Below the pieces are notes generated by a model. The model saw only the letters and a list, made by a program, of their open reading frames with translations, searched no databases and was not told the origin of the DNA. This document shows, one piece after another, positions 29,699-64,000 of a DNA stretch of 64,000 nucleotides. Location: assembly GCA_033442325.1 (NCBI GenBank), contig JAWQFM010000012.1:217899-281898 (forward strand). The letters are read 5' to 3'. This DNA comes from Salpingoeca rosetta. Lineage: Eukaryota > Protista > Choanoflagellata. The position numbers and the translations under genes were made by a program. How positions within the stretch are numbered: the first letter of the stretch is position 1; the number at the start of each line of letters is the position of its first letter.

Positions 29699-36452
<6,754 letters not shown>

Positions 36453-40956: not shown

Positions 40957-50718
<9,762 letters not shown>

Positions 50719-50787
50719 CTGAAGCACAGAGAGCTCGAGAGAGTGTGTACAAAAGTGCATGTATGTGTATGTGTATGTGTATATGTA

Positions 50788-50824
<37 letters not shown>

Positions 50825-51559
50825 GTGTTTAAACGCGTGTGTCTCGTGACATGAGTGCCCGTGAAGTGGTACGACTGCACAAGAAGAGGTGCCAGCGTGT
50901 CGAGAGAAGAAACATGGTTCTTGGCATTGCCATGTGACCGCGGGCGACACGCAGAACGAGGTTTGAACTGCGCACGACCGCGGTCTGCGCACCCATCGAA
51001 TCGCAAAAAGAAAAAAAAAAACGGGGGGAAGAAGGATAATCACCAGAGCAAGCAATGAAGGAGAGAAGGAGAGGCGACAAAGCAAGCAAGCAAGCAGACA
51101 ACGAATGGCCAGGCACGCGAATCGCACGGCCAGCAAGAGAGCAAGAGGACGACATGGAACACGCATCATTGTTATCATATCCAGCGCACGAACAGATGAG
51201 CGGAGAGACAATGAAGAGGGCGAAGGCGAGGGCAAGAGCAAGGCGGACGCCAGCACGCGGGAGACATCCGTTCCGGCGCAGTTCCACGAGTTTGTTGGTT
51301 GGAGCGTCCAGAGTCATGGAACGGTGCGAGTCGCAGTCCGTTCAACCAGGTGCGTCGTGTATGTGTGCGTGTGCATGTGTGTGTGTGTGTGTGCGTGCGT
51401 GTGCGTGTGCATGTGCATGTGCGTGTGCGTGCGCGTGCGCGCGCGTGTGCGTGTGTGTGCATGTGCGTGTGTATGCGTGAGCGACGAGTTTGGGTCCATT
51501 CTGATGCCATCGTTCACAACCACAACACAGGGCGTGACTGGCTGTCTGACTGACTGAAT

Positions 51560-51745
51560 GCATGGCACCCGAACCGACAACGAGTGGCGTGGTAACCCCC
51601 ACAACATACCTTCCTCCTGCCAGCCCAACGGACCGACAGGAAGGATGGCGACCTCATCCGGGTCCAGAAGAACGCGTGAGCCCTTCTGGAGCACCAGAGT
51701 GTGCCGCCAGACCATCCAGGCTAGAGGCCCAGATGGTGCCGATGC
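51560..51745 (-). ncRNA. Candidate omega-RNA scaffold (multi-hairpin RNA downstream of the Fanzor-like gene)
   Basis: Read on the minus strand: closing stem GCAUcGGCACC/GGUGCCAUGC; hairpin ACCAUCUGGGC/GCCUGGAUGGU (51711-51737); hairpin UCCAGAAGGGC/GUUCUUCUGGA (51663-51690); hairpin CUUCCUGUCGGUCC/GGGCUGGCAGGAGG (~51613-51643); extra helix UGGCGGC/GUCGCCA. The mismatches are G-U pairs on the minus strand only. It lies ~200 nt after the Fanzor stop. Confidence 0.55.
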
Positions 51746-51904
51746 TGTGTAAGGCAAGGTTCATCACACGTGCATGAGACTTGTGTGAGGGGCGTTAGTG
51801 TGGGGATTCTGCTTCAACAAGCAACGGCAGTCATCTGCAACAACACGACAACAAGAGCAGCAGCACGAAGATGAACGCAGCAGCAGCAACAACAACAACA
51901 ACAT

Positions 51905-51951
<47 letters not shown>

Positions 51952-51952
<1 letters not shown>

Positions 51953-54900
51953 CATCCCACGTTTGCTATGCTCCATTCGCGACACATGCGGCGCGACACT
52001 GTCACCAGCCCGTTATCCATATCAGGACGGTCCGGCTCGGAGGACCCACGCCACGGACCAAGCTCACCGTTTGCCTCCTCCACCAAGGACCTGCACACCC
52101 ACAAGGCACGGGCGCATCGATTGCGGTGAGATTGCGGAACAACACACACACACACACACGTGTGCACACATGCACTCGCACATGCACACACTTATATACA
52201 ATTTACACTCACTCATACGCATTTACACACACACATGCGCTCACGCACAAACTCATGCACTCACATGTACACACATGCACACGTGAACACTCGCATACAC
52301 ACGTGCACACACGCATACATACTGACACACACGCATTCACATACACACGCACACGCTCGCCTACATGGAACCATACCTCGCAGCGATGGTCTTTGCGGCA
52401 GCAACGTCTCGGTCAGCAGACGCACCGCAGTGCGTACACGTGGCAATCCTGTCAACCATTTGCGTACACACGTGCATGAGCACACACGCACATGCGCACA
52501 CACGCATATCCGCACCCTCTTCTCACATACATGCGCACACACACAACCACCCATATCCGCACCCTCTTCTCACATACATGCGCACACACACAACCACCCA
52601 TATCCGCACCCTCTTCTCACATACATGCGCACACACACAACCACGCATATCCGCACCCTCTTCTCACATACATGCGCACACACACAACCACGCACATTCA
52701 TGCACATACCTCGTTTGCTCGTCAATGCGGTTTGGCCAGGCACAGCAGAGGGAATACTTTGTCGTCCTGAACTCCTCCACAATTTTTGTGTCGACCCGGC
52801 AGCCGATGGCGCGGCGTAGCTCCAGGATGGGAGCCTTTGTCCCTCCGCCGCGACCCTTATGGACGCTGGGAGCAGGAGGCAAGAGAGGCAAGAGGCGAGT
52901 TCAGTTGGGCTTTTGTCGGTGTGGCGTGACCGTTGGATGTGGGCAAGGGTGCATTGTTGTGCGTGTGTATGTGTGTGCGTGTGTGTGTGTGTGTGCTTAC
53001 CAGTCTCCGAAGAACACCCGACAGTCGCGTCCAAAGCGTGTCGCAAGCTCGCCGGCGACTCTGCTTCGGAAGCGACAGTGCTTCAGCTTCTCATGAAGCC
53101 TCCACTTCAACTCTCGCCTGCTCACACCTTCCCTCAAACACTCCCTCGCAGACGCAACCACATCGTCCACGCTCCCTGGCTCCGCACCCCCGCCCTGCTC
53201 TTCCCGTTCTCGCTGCTCCCGCTCTTCCTCTCCCTTGTCCCTGCCTTCCTGCCCCTCTCCCTTGTCCCTGCCTCCCTGCTCCTCCTGCTGCTGTCGTCTC
53301 AGCTGCTCCTCCTTCTCAATCCGTGCCTTCTCTTTCCTGCGCCTGCTCCTCTCCCTCTTCGTCCGCTTGCCCCGCTCCCTCTTCTTCCTGCGTGACCCCG
53401 TCTCCCCCTTCCCCATCGCCCCTCCCTGCTCCCCACCCTCGTCGCTACCCCCTGACCTTGCTGGCACTGTCGCCGTTGGCTTGTGGTGTCGCCGTCCCCG
53501 CCCCGTATAAAGCTGGTTCACTATTCGCTTCTGCGACACAATCATTTTTTTGCCATCTTGGATCCGAACGCAGGCAAGCGGGATGCGGGTGCCTGGGTCG
53601 ACCCCAACCACGGGTGTGATGGGGCTGGTGTCGCAGACGGTGTCGCGGCGCGCGCTGGGCTCCACCAGGAGGTATGCCGTGTAGCCGTCCGTCCTGATGG
53701 ACGTGACGCGACGCTTCCGGAACTGCCTGGCCACGTCTGCTCCGAGGAAATCGAGGAGGGACAGAGCTTGCCTTGGCGGTGGCCGCACTGCGGCAGGCTG
53801 TCGGCACTGGCGCTGGGAGTGGCCGAGGCGGCCACACTTGAAGCAGGTCAGGTCCCGTAGTAGTCCTGCGTCTAGTTGTATGAAAGGGTGCTTGTTTGTG
53901 AATGTGGGGAATATCTTGAGCGAGGTCAAGTCGGTGTCGGGCGGTGCAAGGGTCCTCGCAAGATGCTGCGCGGCGCCGATGTAGAGGGCCAGCTCGGCCG
54001 TGTGCTCACATGCGAAGCGCGCGCCTTCGTCATGGTGCTCCGCCACCTTCTTCAGTTGCCGTTGAGCAGCTCTTGCCTTGTTCTTGAGATCCCGTTGGAG
54101 GAGCGGGGTGAACTCTTTGGACGCCAGGTTCAGGAGCTTGTATGCCTAAGTGGTGAGGATGAGCACATGCATGCGCGCGTGTGAGTTGGTTGTGTGTGCG
54201 TGTGTATGAGTTGGTTGTGTGTGTCGCGTTGGTCGAGCGGGGACACACACCGCGATGCATGATGTGGCAACAGCAGGCATGGGAGTAGGATCATCAAGCA
54301 GACAAGGCAAACACGCAAGCATTCGCACAGACATACCATGGTGGCCGTCATCCATTTCGGTGGGTCCGGTATCCCCACGCCGTGCTGTCGGAGGATTGAC
54401 AGCATCGGATGCTGGCTATGTTTTTTGTGGTTGCGCAGTGTGGTGAAGAGGTTGCTTAGCTTGTCTGCTGTCAGCTGTGGCGCCAAGTGCTGGAAGCAGT
54501 AGGCAGGTCTTGGGGATTTGCCTGTGGCTGCTGCTGTGACTGTTGTTGCAGTGGCGGGCGGTGTTGTTGCTGTGGCTGCTGTTGTTGCTGCTGCACCTTT
54601 TGCCCTCTTGCACGGGTTGTCAGACGGCGACGCCGCTCGGGACTTCTTGTGGTCCTTCTTCTTCTTCTTCTTCTTCTTGAGGTCCTCGACGCCTTCGGCA
54701 CGCTCCTGGGCCTCGCGGAAGGCGACCTTGCGCTCCACAATTTCCTTTCTTGTGGTCTGGGCGAGGTCCGCCAGAGTGGAGAGGATTTCCCGGTGGTGTT
54801 GTTCCGCAGTGCGCAGAATGTGTAGGTAGAGTGCCGTGGTTGCAGTGCACTTCATCTGCCCAGCATACCTGCGTCAAGCGTGGATGTGCGTGACAAGGCA

Positions 54901-57900
54901 GGGCGGGTGTGCGCATGCATGAGCGTGTGATTGCGCACGCGGGCACAAACCTCGCATGAAGTGCGAGAGTGGGATGAAGGGTGCATGGTGCAGTGAAGAG
55001 AGCAGTCAGGCAGTTCAGCGCATTGTCGGCCATACCTGCACATCTCCAGCACCTTTGAGCGCTCCAGCTCCACTCCAAGCCGCTTGAAGGGCATAAGGAC
55101 CGCCACCCTGTTGTGCACCAACATCGATAATTGCAGTTGGAAGAGGGCAAAGTGTGAGCGGGCGCAGGGCCAAGCGACAAGGGTTCAGTCACAGGTGCAG
55201 ACGGCAAGCGGTTCACGCAGCACAAACACAACGCATGCAACATAGCGCAGCAGGCAGGCTATGCAAGAGCAAACCTTGGGTTCTTGTTCTGATCTTGACC
55301 GCGTCGCTTCTGCCCACGTTTTCCCTGCTTGGTGCTCTTGCCACAATCGTCACGTCCATTGCGATCGTGAGGCTTGCGCCCTGGACGCCGCGTACGCTGC
55401 GTCACCATACAAAAAACGTCACCGGATGGTACATAAGTCCACAGCGGGAAATCTCAGGGTTTCAGGCACAGCAAGCGCGGCGCACCACACACGGGCGATG
55501 GCATACGTAACCATGTTGAGACTTACGTGTGATGTTGTCTCAAGTCGGCCATTCCGCATGTCGGATACGATGGCTTTGAGAGCCGGGCGAAGCCGCACAC
55601 TGTGGCAGGTGTGGCCCGTGTCAGGGTCTGCGCGTCCACGTGCGCGTTCCACGGCATTCTCCACGTGCACCACTCCGGCGACCGTGTGCCCCTAATGTGG
55701 TTGGTTGCAAACATGTCGGTGAGACGTGAGTGGCGCACAGTGGTTGTGCGATACAAATCAAAGCAGGGCCGTACAAGCAGGCGCACGCTCCGCGAGACAT
55801 TGCAACCCCCCACGCAAGGCATTCACGCAAGACACTGCAATATCATACCTCGTTTGCAGGGTCGCTAGTGAACTCAAACAGAGGGGTTGTGGCAGGATGG
55901 GCGCTGTCGCCGTCGTCGTCGGCCGGCTCTGGTGCAAGTGGTGGCAGCCTGCGCCTTGCCTTCTCAGTGTCGTCCCAGACGACCTGGCAGGCAAAGGCAA
56001 GCATAGCATGCCTTACCCTTGCGTCGAGGTCGTCGGTTATGATGTACTTCTGCCTGAGGTGCTGCATGATGTCGGTGTAGGTCTTGTATTTGTGTGTGAC
56101 GTACATCGCCGTGCGCATGCCGATCCCGTGAATGTGCGCACCTGGTGAGCAGGGGAAGGGGCAGCAATGCGTGAGTACTTGGCGCACACGAGCACACGAA
56201 GAGAGAGATAGAGACAGAGAGACAGAGAGAGAGATAGGGGAGGGAGAGACAGAGAGACAGAGAGAGATAGGGGAGGAGGGATGCAAGTGCACACGTGCAC
56301 ACAGACAGACACTTGCACGCTTACAAGCGCGCATACATGCAAGCATGCACAGACAGACGCGCAGGCATACACACAGGCAAACACGTAAGGCCAAGCACGT
56401 GCATAACTCATACCGGAGTGCTTTGGAAGGTAATCGCAACCGGACAGTACAGCAGCAAGCTGCAGCGTGTCCAGGCGAAGATCGCGAAGCGACAGGCGAA
56501 CGCCGTAGCGCGTTAACGTGAGCTCCTGCAGGTGGTGAAACTGGATCGAATCACAGGTCCTGCCAGGTGTGTGATGTGATGTGAGTGGGGCAAGGCAGCA
56601 GCAGGTCGCGCGCGGTGGGATCAAAACGCTTGTTACAAGGAGCATGGTGGGAAGTCGACGTGGCAAAGGCAGGTCAAATGCACTCAAAGGCATGCCAAGT
56701 GGCATGCACAAGCATGCACAAGCAAGCAAGCGGGACATCAACACGATGGCTCACCCGGAGCTTCGCAGGTTGCGGAGGACNNNNNNNNNNNNNNNNNNNN
56801 NNNNNNNNNNNNNNNNNNNNNNNNNNNNNNNNNNNNNNNNNNNNNNNNNNNNNNNNNNNNNNNNNNNNNNNNNNNNNNNNNNNGCCACCACGTACTCTGT
56901 GAGACCAAGCACAAACAAGCACAGCGGGTTCGTGAGGAAGAACGGTCTCCGTGCAAGCCACTCGGACACAAGATGGGGGCGGGACGGAGGAAGGGGCACA
57001 GAGGGCTCACAAAGATGGTCAAGTGTCACTGCCAGCGCGCGCACACACACGTGCACGCACAGCAGGGCAAATCAAGCGATCACATGCATGTACAGGAGGG
57101 CAAATCAAGCGATCACATGCACCAATGTTGAGGCGATCCAGCATGGCCATGAGGGTGCGTTGCATGTCACGGCTGACGTGCAATGCCCTTCTGCTGGCCT
57201 TTCTTGCTTCGTGGACTTTTCCTTGCTTGCGGAGCTTGAGCGCCTCCTCTCTCGCGGCCCTGTAACATCCACAATCCATGACAAAGAACGGTGCGTGAGC
57301 ATGACAAGCGTTGGCTGCAGGGCGGTTGCAGCTCTGCTCTTGAGCAATCACAGGCAGGTGTTCTTACTTTCGTTGGCGCTGACGGCGCGCGTTTTCCTCT
57401 GCTTTGGCGGCGAGGGGAGCGCCATCAAACACCACGACAGGTGTGATTCCGGCTGTCGTCAGGAGGGCGAGCCTCTTGAAGACAAATCTGCAGCGTTGAC
57501 ACGCATGTCACAGAGTGAGTAGTAGAAGCACGGAAGCAGCAGGCAGCAGGCAGCACAATGTGGCAGGGCTGGCATGCATGTACAGGCGTGGGGTGATGGT
57601 GTGTGTCGTACCTGTAAGGACGTACGTCCTCGGCGTTGCGCAGCAGTTCCAAGGACCTGGAATAGCATCCTGTCAAGTGCATCGATGTGAGTAGATAGAA
57701 AGGAGGAAGGGAAGGGAAGGGTGTTCGAGATCATGTTTGAGGGCGATCCAGGAGGGCGACGCAATCAAGCAGGCAGAGCAACCAAGCAGGCAGAGCAACC
57801 AAGCAGGCAAACCCCTTACCCTTATAGGCAAAGGATGATATGTCAATGTCAATGGCCACGCGTTGGCCAGTGAACCTTTCAAGGTTCACTGTCTGTACCA

Positions 57901-57924
57901 CGGGGCGTACCAGGTTGATCAGTC
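51952..57924 (-). CDS. EXO1-type (XPG/FEN1 family) 5'-nuclease fused to Fanzor1/TnpB-like RNA-guided RuvC nuclease, ~1,135 aa, 15 exons, start codon unresolved
   Basis: Exons: 57820-57924, 57612-57669, 57368-57487, 57123-57259, 56755-56896, 56414-56559, 55849-56141, 55527-55691, 55275-55396, 55036-55107, 54337-54868, 53001-54145, 52710-52865, 52377-52448, 51952-52090. All are GT-AG and all phases are compatible. EXO1 motifs: GLINLVRP..FTGQRVAID; VVFDGAPLAAKAEENARR; LSGCDYL..GIGMRTA. Fanzor motifs: SIRTDG; VVGVDPG; FFGD; VEEFRTTKYSLCC; CTHCGASADRDVAAAKTI. Confidence 0.85.
52505..52694. repeat. 47-bp minisatellite, 4 copies, intronic
   Basis: Unit catatccgcaccctcttctcacatacatgcgcacacacacaaccacc starts at 52505, 52552, 52599 and 52646. 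Confidence 0.95.
56781..56883. other. Assembly gap (103 N) inside an EXO1-domain exon
   Basis: N run between EYVVA and VLRNL, which lie in the same frame. Confidence 0.99.
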
Positions 57925-58642
57925 CTGGTCGCTCACACACACACAGGCAACAACGCAAGCACACGCGAAAACACGTGCGCAAGCTACCCAGACCCAGGCG
58001 TAAAACTGCTGAGTCAGCAAAAATGGAGAAGCGAGCACAATTTCGTGAGGACAACGATGATGAACGCAGCCGCGCGGCGCAACGGGTAAGCGAAAACAAG
58101 ATTGGAGATGGGCAAGGGGAGAGGGGAGGTGGGACAAGGGCGAGGAGAGAGGGGAGATGGGAGATGGGAGAGGGGAGAAGGGAGACGGGAGACGGGAGAC
58201 GGGAGATGGAGACAAGGCCCCGTGCCGTCACAAAATACGATGGCCGCAGAACACCGATGGGGTGCCAACGAACAGCAAACATCTGCAAGGTATGCTGTTA
58301 CAGGAAGGGGAGGGGGAAGAGGACATGGATGGATATTGGGATATTGGGCAAAGGCGTACCTTTTGTTGATGCTTGGGTGAGGCGGGGAGGGGGGAGGCGA
58401 GTGCGGAAGAAGAAACCGGGCGCTGCTGGAGATAGCTGAGGAGAGGGTGACGGGGGGGGGAAGCGAGAGAAGGAGAGAGGAAGATGGTGAGTCGAGGATG
58501 CATGATGCTGTCAGCGTACAGATGTGCGGGCGGTGCTCATGCGCTCTTTCACACACTCACACCACGCACACGCACGCTCACACACACACGCAGGTGCACA
58601 ACCATGCCTGGCGTCATCCTCACTCACACACACACACACACA

Positions 58643-58701
<59 letters not shown>

Positions 58702-58872
58702 ACACACACACAGGTGCACAATACAGGTGCACAATGACGACGGCGTCATCCTCACTTACACGCAGGCGCAGACGAGCGGGAAAATGAATGTGGCACAGGT
58801 GAGTGAGTGTGTTTGTTGTGTTGCAGTCTGTGCGATCGTTCGCACACGCACGTGTGTCTGCAATTGTATGTG

Positions 58873-59289
58873 TGTTTCGTCTCCCAGCCCCAGTTATGCA
58901 ACAGGCACGTGAGTGTTTCGTCTTCGTCTCCCCCCCCCAGTTATGCAACAAGCACGTGCGTGTTTCGTCTCCCCCCCCCACCAGTTATGCAACAAGCACG
59001 TGCGTGTTTCGTCTCCCCCTCCCCCATGTTTCGTCTCCCCCTCCCCCAGTTATGCAACAGGCACGTGCATGTTTCGTCTCCCCCTCCCCCAGTTATGCAA
59101 CAGGCACGTGCATGTTTCGTCTCCCCCTCCCCCAGTTATGCAACAGGCACGTGCATGTTTCGTCTCCCCCTCCCCCAGTTATGCAACAGGCACGTGCATG
59201 TTTCGTCTCCCCCTCCCCCAGTTATGCAACAGGCACGTGCATGTTTCGTCTCCCCCTCCCCCAGTTATGCAACAGGCACGTGCATGTTT
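58873..59289. repeat. 43-bp minisatellite, ~9 copies (first few degenerate)
   Basis: Unit tgtttcgtctccccctcccccagttatgcaacaggcacgtgca; the period of 43 was checked between 59047 and 59090. Confidence 0.93.
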
Positions 59290-59872
59290 AGCGCCACGCA
59301 ACACACACACACACACACAATCACACACACACACACACAATCACAGGTGCCACGCCGAGAAGTTGGCACGGCACGAGTAGCTCTGCGGTTCCGTGAGCGG
59401 CCAGCGGGCGGTTGCGCTGGACATTGTGTGCATGTACGAGCAGCCGCGATGGCTGACGGTTGAGGAGTCGCGGGAGCTGCTGGAGAAGGAGGCGGTGGCG
59501 CTGTCGCACACAAAGGCGGAAAAGGCGCGGAGCAAGGCACGCAAGGAGGCAGAGCAGGAAGAGGATGAGGATGATGAGGATGGAGATGAGGATGGTGAGG
59601 ATGATAAGAAGGACTCCAAGAAGACAGGGAAGAAGAACAACAAGGGCAAGACAAAGGGCAACAAGGTCAGGGGCAACAAGCACAGCAAAGACACCACCAG
59701 CACCAACGACGACGATGCAAATGGCGATGATGACGAGGATAAGAAGAGCGAAGGCGATGTGCTGGAAAGTGAGCACGACACAACTCGACGGCCCGTGTGA
59801 CATCATGCATCTCCTGCGAACAGCAGAGGCGCTTCCCCTCACTCTCCATGCCCACAGGTGAGCTTGTGCGTG

Positions 59873-59913
<41 letters not shown>

Positions 59914-60407
59914 NNNNNNNNNNNNNNNNNNNNNNNNNNNNNNNNNNNNNNNNNNNNNNNNNNNNNNNNNNNNNNNNNNNNNNNNNNNNNNNNNNNNNNN
60001 NNNNNNNNNNNNNNNNNNNNNNNNNNNNNNNNNNNNNNNNNNNNNNNNNNNNNNNNNNNNNNNNNNNNNNNNNNNNNNNNNNNNNNNNNNNNNNNNNNNN
60101 NNNNNNNNNNNNNNNNNNNNNNNNNNNNNNNNNNNNNNNNNNNNNNNNNNNNNNNNNNNNNNNNNNNNNNNNNNNNNNNNNNNNNNNNNNNNNNNNNNNN
60201 NNNNNNNNNNNNNNNNNNNNNNNNNNNNNNNNNNNNNNNNNNNNNNNNNNNNNNNNNNNNNNNNNNNNNNNNNNNNNNNNNNNNNNNNNNNNNNNNNNNN
60301 NNNNNNNNNNNNNNNNNNNNNNNNNNNNNNNNNNNNNNNNNNNNNNNNNNNNNNNNNNNNNNNNNNNNNNNNNNNNNNNNNNNNNNNNNNNNNNNNNNNN
60401 NNNNNNN
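59914..60407. other. Assembly gap (494 N)
   Basis: N run following a (TG)n tract. Confidence 0.99.
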
Positions 60408-61944
60408 GCATCGTCGACGACCGCTTGGACGTGCTGTCGTTCCGGTGTCTGGTGCACCCGCTGGAGCATCGCATCAACTTCTGCAGAAGCCGGACTGGGA
60501 CAACAATATGACGCAGGTTGCAGACCGGTTTGTCAACGCCGTGTGCCCGCAACCGCGCGTTGATGTGCTCAAGCTGATGCAAACCTTTGCCGAGCTCGCC
60601 AACACCTGGCCCCTCCTCACCGAGCAAAAGCACAGGTGCGTTGGTATGCTTGTTGTATGTGCATGCGTGTGTGTTTGTGAGATCGCCTGTGCGCGTGTGT
60701 GCGTGTGTTTGTGAGATCGCCTGTGCGCGTGCGCGTGTGCGTGTGCGTGTGCGTGTGTTTGTGCCTGCGAGATTGGTGCATTTGGTTTGATGTGTACCTG
60801 GGATTCAGTGCCATTGCTGCTCAACAGAGGGCTGCGCTTGAACGTTGTTGTATTGTATTCCCATTTCCCATCTCCGCTCGTCTTCATGCTCATGGCCATC
60901 CCTCCGTCCACCTCAACAGGACGCTGGTTGAGAAGTTCCTCCAGCTGCACGACGACTACCTGGTGGTTGAAGAGGGAGCAGGAAAACTGCAGGACATTTC
61001 CGTCGCAAACGCCGGCCTCGCGGGTGCGTTCACGCGCTGCTGTCGTGTCTTTTATTTTGCTCCAACATGTTATGTGATCTTGCTTCCACCTGCTGTGGCG
61101 ATTGCAGTGTGGTAATATGACACCTGTTGTTTGCACGGGTTGCTGTGCCGACCCCAGCGCTTGTGCTCAATACTTACCGTCGACTCCTCGCTTCACAATC
61201 TGCATGTTGTCGTGCGTGCCTGCAGGCATTTCGATGCAGTCGCTCGGCATTGAGGATCTTGGCGGCGACCTCGACAATCTCAGTGACGATGAGAGCGTCA
61301 GCAATGACGACGACGAGGAGGACAATGATGACCGGCGCCGGAAGCGCAGCGCGATGCAGCACGACGGCCGTGGTGGTCGTGGTGGTCGTGGTGGTCGTGG
61401 TCGTGGTGGTCGTGGCCGTGGTCGTGGTCGTGGTCGAGGACGTGGCCGTGGTCGTGGTCGTGGTGGTCGTGATAGCAAGCGCCCAAAGCGGGAGGATGAC
61501 ACTTCTAACGACAACGCTGACGATGATGACACGAAGCGCGATGGTGCCGACGCCACCAACGATGGCGACGATGCTGTGCAGGCGTATGATCCAACGGCGG
61601 CTGCGCATCGTCGCGTGTTCTGGCGGCGGCGGCGGCAGATGGTGCGCATGGTGCGCAAGCGGCGAAAGGTCGCGCTAAGCCAGATGGAGGCCATGCTCTC
61701 TGTGCTCGCCAGCTTCAACAACGGGAAGGCGCTGATGGAGTGGGAGCGCCTGCAGGCGATTGTGCTCAACTTCCTGCACCATTCTGACGCGAACATCCGC
61801 GCCAACGCCCTCAAGGCAAGCGCTTCGTTCAGCCGCATGGTGCGCAAGTACCTGGAGCCCATGATGGCTGTCAACACGGAGATGGGGCCCCAGCTCACAG
61901 AGCGCTTGAAGACATTCAACGTCGCCTCCCCAGCCGGTGTGTGT

Positions 61945-62021
<77 letters not shown>

Positions 62022-62121
62022 TGTGTGTGTGTGTGAACCTTGTAGCATTTTTTCGTGTGATTCCGTTCACACTCGCTGTACAACACTTACCCCCCCCCCA
62101 TACGATTCACCACCACCCCTT

Positions 62122-62740
62122 TCTACACGTGTGCAGTTGTAGAACCGGAGCACGTTGAAGAGGTGACGACCGTGTTCTTCCGGCTGCTACAGGCCAAGAT
62201 GTTTGCGCGCAAGGGCAAGTCCCAGAAGTACTCGCCCAAGTTCCAGCGCGCCCTCATTCTCCGCTACTTGGCCGACTGCCGCACAGAGGGCGGTGAGGGC
62301 TTTGTGCTGGATGCGTTCCTGCATCTGCTTGTGCTGCCGTTTGCGCAGTCGCCAACGCCACCCGTCTCCGTTGCGCCGGGCGCCGCTGTGGATGTGGACG
62401 CGCTGCTGGCGGAGTTCAACGTCGGCACAGACGTGCACGCAGCTGTTCCGCTCAACCGCCAAGTCGGTGCGTATCTTAAGCTGCTCGTGGTCTACACGTG
62501 TGCAGTCGTAGCACCGGAGCATGTTGAAGAGGTGACAACCGTGTTCTTCCGGCTGCTACAGGCCAAGATGTTTGCGCGCAAGGGCAAGTCCCAGAAGTAC
62601 TCGCCCAAGTTCCAGCGCGCCCTCATTCTCCGCTACTTGGCCGACTGCCGCACAGAGGGCGGTGAGGGCTTTGTGCTGGATGCGTTCCTGCATCTGCTTG
62701 TGCTGCCGTTTGCGCAGTCGCCAACGCCACCCGTCTCCGT
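62122..62740 (+). repeat. 369-bp tandem duplication of a UTP20-like exon with its splice acceptor
   Basis: Copy 1 starts at 62122 and copy 2 at 62491. They differ by about 4 substitutions near the start, then are identical up to the gap. Confidence 0.9.
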
Positions 62741-63026
62741 NNNNNNNNNNNNNNNNNNNNNNNNNNNNNNNNNNNNNNNNNNNNNNNNNNNNNNNNNNNN
62801 NNNNNNNNNNNNNNNNNNNNNNNNNNNNNNNNNNNNNNNNNNNNNNNNNNNNNNNNNNNNNNNNNNNNNNNNNNNNNNNNNNNNNNNNNNNNNNNNNNNN
62901 NNNNNNNNNNNNNNNNNNNNNNNNNNNNNNNNNNNNNNNNNNNNNNNNNNNNNNNNNNNNNNNNNNNNNNNNNNNNNNNNNNNNNNNNNNNNNNNNNNNN
63001 NNNNNNNNNNNNNNNNNNNNNNNNNN
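62741..63026. other. Assembly gap (286 N)
   Basis: N run truncating copy 2 of the duplication. Confidence 0.99.
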
Positions 63027-64000
63027 TGTTGTCGTGTGACCATTCCTTTAACCCTATGTTGCCCGTTGCCCTGATCTTCCCTTTCCACCACACTTCTCAA
63101 CACCCCCCCCCCCCCACCCGTCACAGGTTTCCTGATGCTTGCCGAGTCGCTGCTGAAGGTGTTTGACACGCGTCTGCAGCCGCACCTGCCGATGATGGTG
63201 GCCATCATGGTGCAGATGGCGCGCGAGGCCCACGCTCTGCTCGCCGTCGTGATGAGGTCGCCCCGCGCTACATCCGTGAACTCAGGATGTTCCGCAAGCT
63301 CAGCATCCGCCGCCTCTGCAGCCTCTACAACTTCTTCAACGCGGTGCGTGGCGTGTGTACGTGTGTGCGTGTGTGCGTATGTATGTGTGTGTAATAGGAG
63401 GGTGCACCGGAATTGGAAACATGCACGTGCGTCAATCAACCACACACGTGCATGCGGATCATGTGTTCATCCGTCATTGCGCCTGCTCTGTCCTCCTTCC
63501 TACTGTGCACGTGTGCAGAAATTGCTGGAGCCGTTTGCGAGCGCGGTGCACGAGCACGTGATTGGGCCGCAGGTGGCGTCGCTGTATCACGAATGCTCAA
63601 ATGCCGTCGTCCCCATCCTCCAACTCCTCATGTGAGCACACACCGCTGGGTGTAGATGAGGGCTACGCGGCTGGAGTTGTCATTGGGGGTGTTGTTTCGG
63701 CCTTGTCTGTTGTTTGTGTTTTGATTCGCCCTCCTCCATCTTTGCCTCACGCAACGTGGCAAACCTGCCCCAAACATCCATGAATGCACAACCGTTCTCC
63801 CCTGCCCACTCCTGCTTGTGATCCCTCTCAATACTCCTGTCCTTCTGCAGCACGTGGAGCGAGGATCCGAAAATGCACCGCATGAACAACAACGGGACGA
63901 TGGAGCGGTGGGACCAGCCCGAGGACATTCAAGAGCTGGCGAAATCGGTTCGTGCTCTGTGTACTGTCACGATGAGACGCACGGAAGCCGGGATGGGGGG

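Follow-up and report, generated by a model that had tools for sequence, protein, structure and literature searches.

Fanzors, the relatives that TnpB and Cas12 have in eukaryotes, raise the question of how a bacterial-style guide RNA, ordinarily excised directly from the tail of the mRNA, comes to be made from an intron-bearing gene read by RNA polymerase II (Pol II). Bacterial TnpB, as in ISDra2, processes the 3' end of its own mRNA into the guide. The known Fanzor guide RNAs (omega-RNAs) come from the 3' non-coding region that abuts the right end of the element (PMC10530073) and are 75-150 nt long, with that of GtFz1 (150 nt) carrying four stem-loops (PMC11423790). Among bacteria, the nearest case of an intron encountering a guide RNA is the IStron, in which a group I intron and an omega-RNA compete (PMC10690162). 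We analyzed the 3' end of a Fanzor gene in a 64,000-nt stretch of the Salpingoeca rosetta genome (contig JAWQFM010000012.1, positions 217,899 to 281,898, assembly GCA_033442325.1; the window below, to whose positions all unlabeled coordinates refer). An earlier note, made from the letters alone, had proposed that positions 51560-51745 hold a densely folded candidate omega-RNA after the Fanzor stop codon.

Judged by its sequence, the gene is the published Fanzor element SAl-2, present here as one spliced XPG-Fanzor open reading frame (ORF). According to the accessible part of the original description, SAl-2 comes from Salpingoeca sp. ATCC 50818, has three copies and is defined at its right end alone (Bao & Jurka 2013, PMC3627910). 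The folded element is best explained as the first and larger of two parts, the 5' one, of a structured non-coding RNA that the XPG-Fanzor transcript carries at its 3' end, where an exon that we call D is spliced to a terminal exon E at the transposon's right end (RE). We give a probability of roughly one half (0.5) to the reading that exons D and E together are an omega-RNA scaffold assembled by splicing, with the flanking DNA as guide.

Splicing and folding at the 3' end of the transcript

Transcript structure was derived from two stranded RNA-seq runs of 2026, mapped to 50400-56300, and from a single set of contigs, which turned out to be spliced RNA. The runs were chosen by species label, and their reads may stem from all near-identical copies of the locus. 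The repeat at 51870-51962 was masked in read mapping. Over the Fanzor coding sequence (CDS; 53552-56300) nearly all reads had their first mate on the plus strand, so that this class reports minus-strand RNA. The best joints, which are those given here, support minus-strand GT-AG introns at 55847-55691, 55526-55397, 55273-55107, 55030-54864, 54335-54145, 52708-52448, 52374-52089 and 51609-50985. The joint of the last of these, 51610-50984, was found in 39 and 28 reads, all with CT..AC ends and the first mate on the plus strand, and in one RNA contig at a depth of 1541; its splice sites are identical in the other copies. On the other side of exon D, minus-strand depth was 0-3 at 51801 and 51815, compared with 56/44 at 51640 and 108/69 at 51996, which places the end of the preceding intron between those two points and 51640. 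The annotated in-frame CDS end, the depth and the preceding polypyrimidine tract together point to the AG at 51746-51745 as its acceptor. Both this AG and the GT at 51609/8 had been flagged in the earlier note as possible limits of an exon: the GT is joined to 50984 in RNA reads, while the AG follows from annotation and depth.

The upstream frame, entering exon D at 51744, stops after 7 codons, leaving roughly the first 24 nt of the exon coding and the remainder non-coding. The annotated CDS therefore ends inside the element, which is an exon of the Fanzor mRNA and not a free-standing unit behind it. Retention of the intron before exon D would end the ORF at a TGA (51954-51952) 208 nt upstream of the element, evidently the stop from which the earlier note had worked. 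That note had also left room for a coding role; the exon is indeed spliced into the mRNA, and nearly all of it is non-coding.

Folded as minus-strand RNA, 51560-51745 has a minimum free energy (MFE) of -97.8 kcal/mol (z -5.38), and none of 200 dinucleotide shuffles folded as well; the plus strand reaches -67.6 kcal/mol (z -2.44). The helices that had been picked out by eye, namely three hairpins, one of them enclosed by a helix of 6-7 bp, and a pair of complementary ends, are all present in the MFE structure (Table 1). The claim that the non-Watson-Crick pairs are G-U on the minus strand was likewise borne out, with 10 of 53 pairs in exon D and 12 of 71 in the four-hairpin spliced RNA being G-U and none falling at an A-C position; because all wobble pairs are of this kind, the minus strand is favored. 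The proposed extent of 186 nt held in part: exon D is the core of the element, and the last 50 nt (51609-51560), which include one arm of the complementary ends, are intronic. The intronic sequence 51609-51480 alone folds no better than chance (z +0.1).

The segment 51610-51744 has the lowest raw MFE of 8313 135-nt windows taken from both strands of the 64 kb, and with composition regressed out it ranks within the top 0.1%. Higher-ranked windows that were inspected (~2760-2950, 1016-1150 and 29966-30100) are foldbacks of microsatellites, in which (GT)n pairs with a nearby (AC)n tract, and no specific structures; the element is the most structured non-repeat RNA segment in the window. Simple repeats do flank it, as had been noted, with CTG/CAG at 51870-51962 on one side and (TG)n at 51354-51483 on the other. 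An Rfam 15 scan of genomic 50500-53000 at E<=1 found no relevant match; the weak matches to microRNA (mir-297-type) and small nucleolar RNA families were driven by the microsatellites of the flanking repeats and lay far below gathering scores. A microRNA precursor, which has one stem of some 20 bp or more that yields a duplex of ~22 nt, was considered separately and rejected: uninterrupted stems measure about 11-15 bp, and it takes bulges and internal loops for the composite second hairpin and the terminal one to reach 18-25 pairs.

Splicing brings the structure together. Exon D alone folds into its three hairpins at -77.4 kcal/mol (z -5.8; plus strand -2.1) and exon E alone folds at -25.4 kcal/mol (z -4.9; plus strand -3.2). 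The spliced D+E of 185 nt reaches -107.1 kcal/mol (z -9.0) as four consecutive hairpins, the last helix beginning at the final G of exon D, spanning the junction and ending one base before the RE, and exon boundaries coincide with helix boundaries. Among 48 GT-AG combinations that would give a product of 60-330 nt, the real join has the best energy per nucleotide. The unspliced 266 nt beside the RE give a z of -3.0 that is owed almost wholly to the terminal hairpin; outside it they are a pyrimidine tract. Along the 3.1-kb reconstructed spliced mRNA, the last two 135-nt windows have z values of -5.5 and -4.8, compared with -3.1 to +1.7 for the others.

Variation among the copies is slight. The copy on GL832961.1 differs from the window at 2 of the 186 nt (99% identity): an A>G change at 51685 turns an A-U into a G-U pair, which is tolerated on the minus strand only, and the second difference falls in the intronic part. 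Exon E is identical in the copy on GL832963.1 and differs in that on GL832961.1 by 1 nt, next to the loop.

The right end and the candidate guide RNA

The repeated unit is found at three loci: the window, GL832961.1 (L001/L004) and GL832963.1 (L002/L006). Beyond the RE the flanks and neighboring genes are unrelated among the three, and at 50934/50935 loose ends with a mixed consensus occur in DNA contigs as well as in RNA reads. The published SAl-2 sequence, in the accessible part of the 2013 supplement, terminates with identical letters, CCCGCGGTCA. Minus-strand reads cross the RE, and more than 100 reads from other copies run 35-44 nt into differing flanks. The analysis shows the fold and its strand bias, the limits of the exons and their splice joint, the common RE and this read-through into the flanks. 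In genomic DNA the element lies 625-810 nt from the RE, and it is only because splicing joins 51610 to 50984, in front of the terminal 50 nt, that it can supply a guide-adjacent scaffold.

These features suggest the following course of events. Pol II would read the gene through the RE into flanking DNA, and the spliceosome would take out the intron before exon D and, in a large share of molecules, the 625-nt intron as well, so that three hairpins (51744-51610) come to abut the fourth (50984-50935) at the transposon boundary. The resulting 185-nt four-hairpin RNA with its flank would have the layout of a TnpB/Fanzor omega-RNA, with the scaffold over the stop codon and the guide from RE-adjacent DNA, and the guide RNA would be released from the tail of the Fanzor mRNA. 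We infer that the Fanzor protein would bind D+E and that the 5' and 3' ends would be processed to give a small RNA. In its overlap with the stop codon, its strand, its multi-stem fold, its contact with the RE and its continuation into the flank, the RNA is built like the guide RNAs of TnpB and Fanzor, after splicing only. The proposal of an omega-RNA thus keeps its footing as to the Fanzor strand, the 3' end of the ORF, transcription and a strand-specific fold, with the amendment that the element is guide-adjacent only once spliced.

Splicing may also bear on the fate of the transcript. By the usual rule, nonsense-mediated decay (NMD) acts where an exon junction lies more than 50-55 nt after the stop. 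The D-E junction is 111 nt past the stop codon, which makes the spliced isoform a predicted NMD target, and splicing could separate a guide-producing from a protein-producing form of the transcript. It is a tentative extension, which we would put at somewhat less than an even chance, that the spliceosome builds the SAl-2 guide RNA from a two-exon scaffold interrupted by a 625-nt intron and that the choice of splicing partitions transcripts between nuclease and guide. Use of the flank as guide would follow by analogy with TnpB and Fanzor (PMC10530073, PMC10432273).

Several observations weigh against this interpretation. The libraries are long-RNA-seq, so the omega-RNA stays a candidate. No joint into the acceptor at 51744 is among the best joints, the repeat 51870-51962 having been masked. 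About one third to one half of molecules keep the 625-nt intron. An omega-RNA with an internal intron has no precedent in the literature searched on Fanzor introns, which places these in the genes and not in the guide RNA; D+E has no sequence similarity to described omega-RNAs, and the Rfam scan gave no relevant family match. At 51640, 17 of 56 reads of one RNA-seq run carry a variant that would break a pair of hairpin 3 in some copy, and the element can be read in two copies only (99% identical), the third lying in a gap, which is too few for a covariation test. At the level of the transposon, the left end of SAl-2 was not found in the three-locus comparison, and the repeated unit, more than 13 kb long, takes in a UTP20-like gene at each of the three loci. 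Finally, judged from the protein sequence, the serine in the zinc ribbon and the XPG-like fusion could mean that this nuclease does not work in the way of a classical homing Fanzor.

The alternative that survives best, although we consider it unlikely, is that D and E make up a structured 3' untranslated region (UTR) without guide function, acting, for example, on mRNA stability, translation termination, splicing or intron retention, or on entry into NMD or escape from it, with the closeness of the RE incidental. The element is demonstrably part of a spliced polyexonic mRNA in which its first 24 nt alone are coding, and in the pre-mRNA the start of exon D pairs with intronic 51568-51560, which could affect use of the 5' splice site. 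Partial retention of the 625-nt intron (39/28 junction reads compared with a minus-strand depth of 16/37 inside it, at 51152) is consistent with such a role as well. Left unexplained, however, are a terminal hairpin that ends exactly at the common RE and an uninterrupted four-hairpin module whose junction-spanning helix is created by the real splice, while the rest of the 3.1-kb mRNA is unstructured. Known Fanzor and TnpB genes place their guide RNA in exactly such a position (PMC10530073, PMC10432273).

The hairpins could also be a signal at the DNA level, (sub)terminal structures in single-stranded DNA (ssDNA) serving one-ended, rolling-circle-like or IS200/IS605/IS607-like transposition, with the RNA as a by-product; we regard this as improbable. 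SAl-2, defined at its right end only in three copies, does resemble elements with fixed 3' and variable 5' ends, the terminal hairpin lies 1-2 nt from the element end, and as ssDNA the minus strand (z -3.7) beats both chance and the plus strand (z -1.35). Of the four hairpins, however, three lie 625-810 nt inside the element and are adjacent to its end in the spliced RNA only, and the G-U pairs that make up 17% of the total would, as G-T, be much weaker in DNA. A DNA signal does not predict that exon boundaries should be helix boundaries. That these boundaries coincide and that structure is limited to the final 185 nt speaks, though not decisively, against both the UTR and the DNA-signal explanations.

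We think it very improbable that the element is a substrate for small-RNA silencing, in which sense hairpins or a sense-antisense duplex would be diced to repress the transposon. A spliced antisense transcript with a depth similar to that of the sense RNA spans the whole element; the stems of 11-15 bp are nevertheless too short for Dicer-type hairpin precursors, and a duplex model has no need of a strand-specific structure. Least credible of all is that 51745-51610 is a true coding exon, one frame being open through exon D and on into exon E, or that the fold is an artefact of composition, since the RNA-supported and annotated frame closes 7 codons into exon D (or, with the preceding intron retained, already at the TGA), the open frame would cross the end of the transposon and go on in unrelated flank, and the shuffles and the 8313 windows both set the fold apart.

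A guide RNA assembled by splicing would be the first omega-RNA to depend on splicing, and it would constitute a natural switch between mRNA and guide. It would also identify a likely guide for an unusual XPG-Fanzor fusion nuclease, and pipelines that look for omega-RNAs in contiguous DNA beside the RE would miss three of the four stems here. The locus offers a concrete, testable case in a genetically tractable choanoflagellate, in which CRISPR knock-in works (PMC7314544), with the two halves of the RNA joined exactly at helix boundaries. Should this not be confirmed, the structured segment would still stand out in the 64 kb and would still lie within a known transposon gene.

The XPG-Fanzor gene and its copies

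Table 1. Features at the 3' end of the SAl-2 XPG-Fanzor locus, in window coordinates
Feature	Position	Strand	Remark
XPG-like-Fanzor gene	51721..56645	-	annotated, L005:10617-15541(-); 5' part cut by N gap 56781-56883
RuvC-I motif VGVDPG	~53600	-	sequence motif
RuvC-II motif VEEFRTT	~52780	-	sequence motif
Zn ribbon and DRD (RuvC-III)	exon 52447-52375	-	sequence motif
Exon C (last Fanzor coding exon before exon D)	52088-51958	-	donor AAC/GT at 51958/51957 gives annotated frame
Intron before exon D, holds CTG repeat	51745..51957	-	near-zero minus-strand depth at 51801/51815
Exon D, 135 nt, three hairpins	51610..51744	-	donor 51610/GT in 39 + 28 reads and RNA contig; core of element
Hairpin 1	51740-51709	-	13 bp, MFE structure
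Stop TAG	51721..51723	-	first stop in phase 0 from 51744; in loop of hairpin 1
Composite hairpin	51708-51647	-	6-7 bp outer helix around 11-bp inner hairpin
Hairpin 3	51645-51612	-	15 bp
Closing helix	51745-51737 with 51568-51560	-	MFE of genomic stretch (pre-mRNA fold)
Intron after exon D, 625 nt, GT-AG, rich in microsatellite and pyrimidine tracts	50985..51609	-	joint 51610-50984
3' third of the element first noted	51560..51609	-	first 50 nt of 625-nt intron; end pairs with start of exon D in pre-mRNA
Exon E, 50 nt, terminal hairpin	50935..50984	-	ends 1-2 nt before RE
Right end (RE) of SAl-2	50934..50935		homology among the three copies stops; element ends in CCCGCGGTCA
Flank directly 3' of scaffold, putative guide of window copy	50915..50934	-	read-through; guide role by analogy
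Antisense transcript	50991..53551	+	depth and joints of first-mate-on-minus reads; covers element and Fanzor 3' half

The public annotation used here is that of scaffold GL832970.1 (GCA_000188695.1), whose sequence is identical to the window. It gives the XPG-Fanzor product 948 aa, ending at the TAG of exon D. Our own exon reconstruction gives 980-984 aa, with at least one internal annotated junction differing, and the CDS end at 51721 is independent of this mismatch. The 349-aa ORF upstream of the element is 98-99% identical to S. rosetta PTSG_12014 and PTSG_04012, the former matching the SAl-2 Fanzor protein in the accessible part of Bao & Jurka 2013 (PMC3627910). The Fanzor motif given in the same part of that work, D-X(125-275)-[TS][TS]-X-X-C4 zinc ribbon-X(5-50)-RD, is found in the SAl-2 protein as VGVDPG, about 230 aa, TTKY, SLCC...CTHC and DRD. 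The zinc ribbon is atypical in having Ser at the first Cys position with an extra Cys adjacent.

Database comparisons of the protein gave a consistent, if faint, signal. The full annotated protein matches PF07282 (Cas12f1-like TNB / OrfB_Zn_ribbon) with an E value of 1.3e-5 and 25.7 bits, below the gathering score of 26.3, and its nearest language-model clusters are PF07282+DUF8286 (score 0.93-0.94). Pfam and NCBIfam searches with the 349-aa ORF alone returned a CCHC knuckle and nothing else, so the full annotated protein was needed for its Fanzor identity. Sequence searches of the PDB, including the solved Fanzor structures, found no Fanzor/TnpB match. A phmmer search of 1.8 billion protein representatives returned the two paralogues and one Fanzor-like protein from the TARA metagenome (E 8e-4), with which the RuvC motifs align, and no others; with no diverged relatives among them, the search gave no further 3' regions to compare for covariation. 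The protein also carries a CCHC zinc knuckle N-terminal to RuvC-I (~53850) and a low-complexity insert of about 100 aa rich in Lys, Glu and Arg (53200-53520, minus strand), between RuvC-I and the conserved region before RuvC-II. This insert is an intron in the annotation of one paralogue, and no RNA joint backs that.

RNA joints at 54863/55031, 55106/55274, 55396/55527, 55690/55848 and 56142/56415 tie exons of an XPG_N/XPG_I-type nuclease to the Fanzor exons. The joined reading (51721-57924, minus strand) is a single open frame, with about 400 codons without a stop, and one 1.7-kb RNA contig covers both parts. Joints and frame point to an XPG/EXO1-like-Fanzor fusion protein. At a paralogous locus, XPG (531 aa) and Fanzor (485 aa) are annotated as separate genes.

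On the opposite strand, the antisense transcript contains introns at 52430-52739 (GT-AG) and 52895-53151 (GC-AG) and has a depth peak at 53158-53551. An 87-aa hypothetical protein, PTSG_07211, is annotated on it at 51105-51679, probably spuriously.

Other genomic copies of the element, which the earlier note had proposed as a check on it, are offered by the two further loci; that on GL832963.1 has a 516-N assembly gap exactly over the element, and a self-BLAST of the element against the 64-kb window found no second copy. A search for further copies with the antisense ORF returned the window's own locus and nothing more. DNA contigs of another run diverge inside the unit at 51081, 52506, 54842 and 56051, which suggests further partial or rearranged copies or strain differences. 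Upstream of the XPG-Fanzor gene and in opposite orientation lies the UTP20-like gene (Pfam UTP20_N and UTP20_C), at 57900-64000 in the window, L004:1-6337 and L006:1-2104, with 91-98% identity; it resembles a housekeeping gene, or else such a gene captured as a copy. In SAl-1, the other S. rosetta Fanzor family, the right end carries about 100 nt of unique sequence, closely preceded by a (TG)n-rich stretch starting with GT, according to the accessible part of the PMC3627910 supplement. There, too, this stretch might be an intron that separates the end of the ORF from the terminal segment.

Comparison with known guide RNA systems

The Fanzor and its element have been known since 2013 as SAl-2, and a guide RNA for SAl-2 is not described in the literature searched. 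Our locus agrees with the accessible part of the 2013 account (PMC3627910) in its three copies, its identical right terminus and a protein that is 98-99% identical to that of SAl-2. The protein of that account has 498 aa and 4 exons and ends in ...ARYGSM; the XPG fusion, the 3' exons D and E and a guide RNA do not figure in this part of the description, which predates knowledge of the RNA-guided function.

Like the omega-RNA of bacterial TnpB, the SAl-2 candidate has a scaffold that lies over the ORF end and the right end, derives from the 3' part of the nuclease mRNA and is followed by a flank that, here as a candidate, is the guide. It is unlike the bacterial RNAs in having an intron in the scaffold, where they have none. 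In the IStron the intron is self-splicing and contains the transposon, whereas that of SAl-2 is spliceosomal and lies inside the scaffold.

Among eukaryotic systems, the locus resembles the Helitron2-associated CrFNuc-1 of Chlamydomonas reinhardtii (PMC10530073), an intron-containing Fanzor gene whose Fanzor RNA (fRNA) lies at the 3' UTR by the element end and has, as here, a terminal hairpin typical of such an end. The introns of CrFNuc-1 are reported in the gene and not in the guide RNA, and its small RNA was seen directly, whereas the SAl-2 RNA is known from long RNA. With the Fanzor omega-RNAs or fRNAs in general (Saito 2023, PMC10432273; Jiang 2023, PMC10530073; Xu 2024, PMC11423790) SAl-2 shares the nuclease strand, the overlap with the ORF's 3' end, a scaffold of several stems, the last of which stands against the right end, and a transcript that runs into the flank; its size of 185 nt with four stem-loops is near that of GtFz1. 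It departs from them in a nuclease fused in frame to an XPG/EXO1-like domain and in a candidate scaffold, seen here in long RNA, that is split in the DNA by a 625-nt spliceosomal intron and becomes contiguous after splicing.

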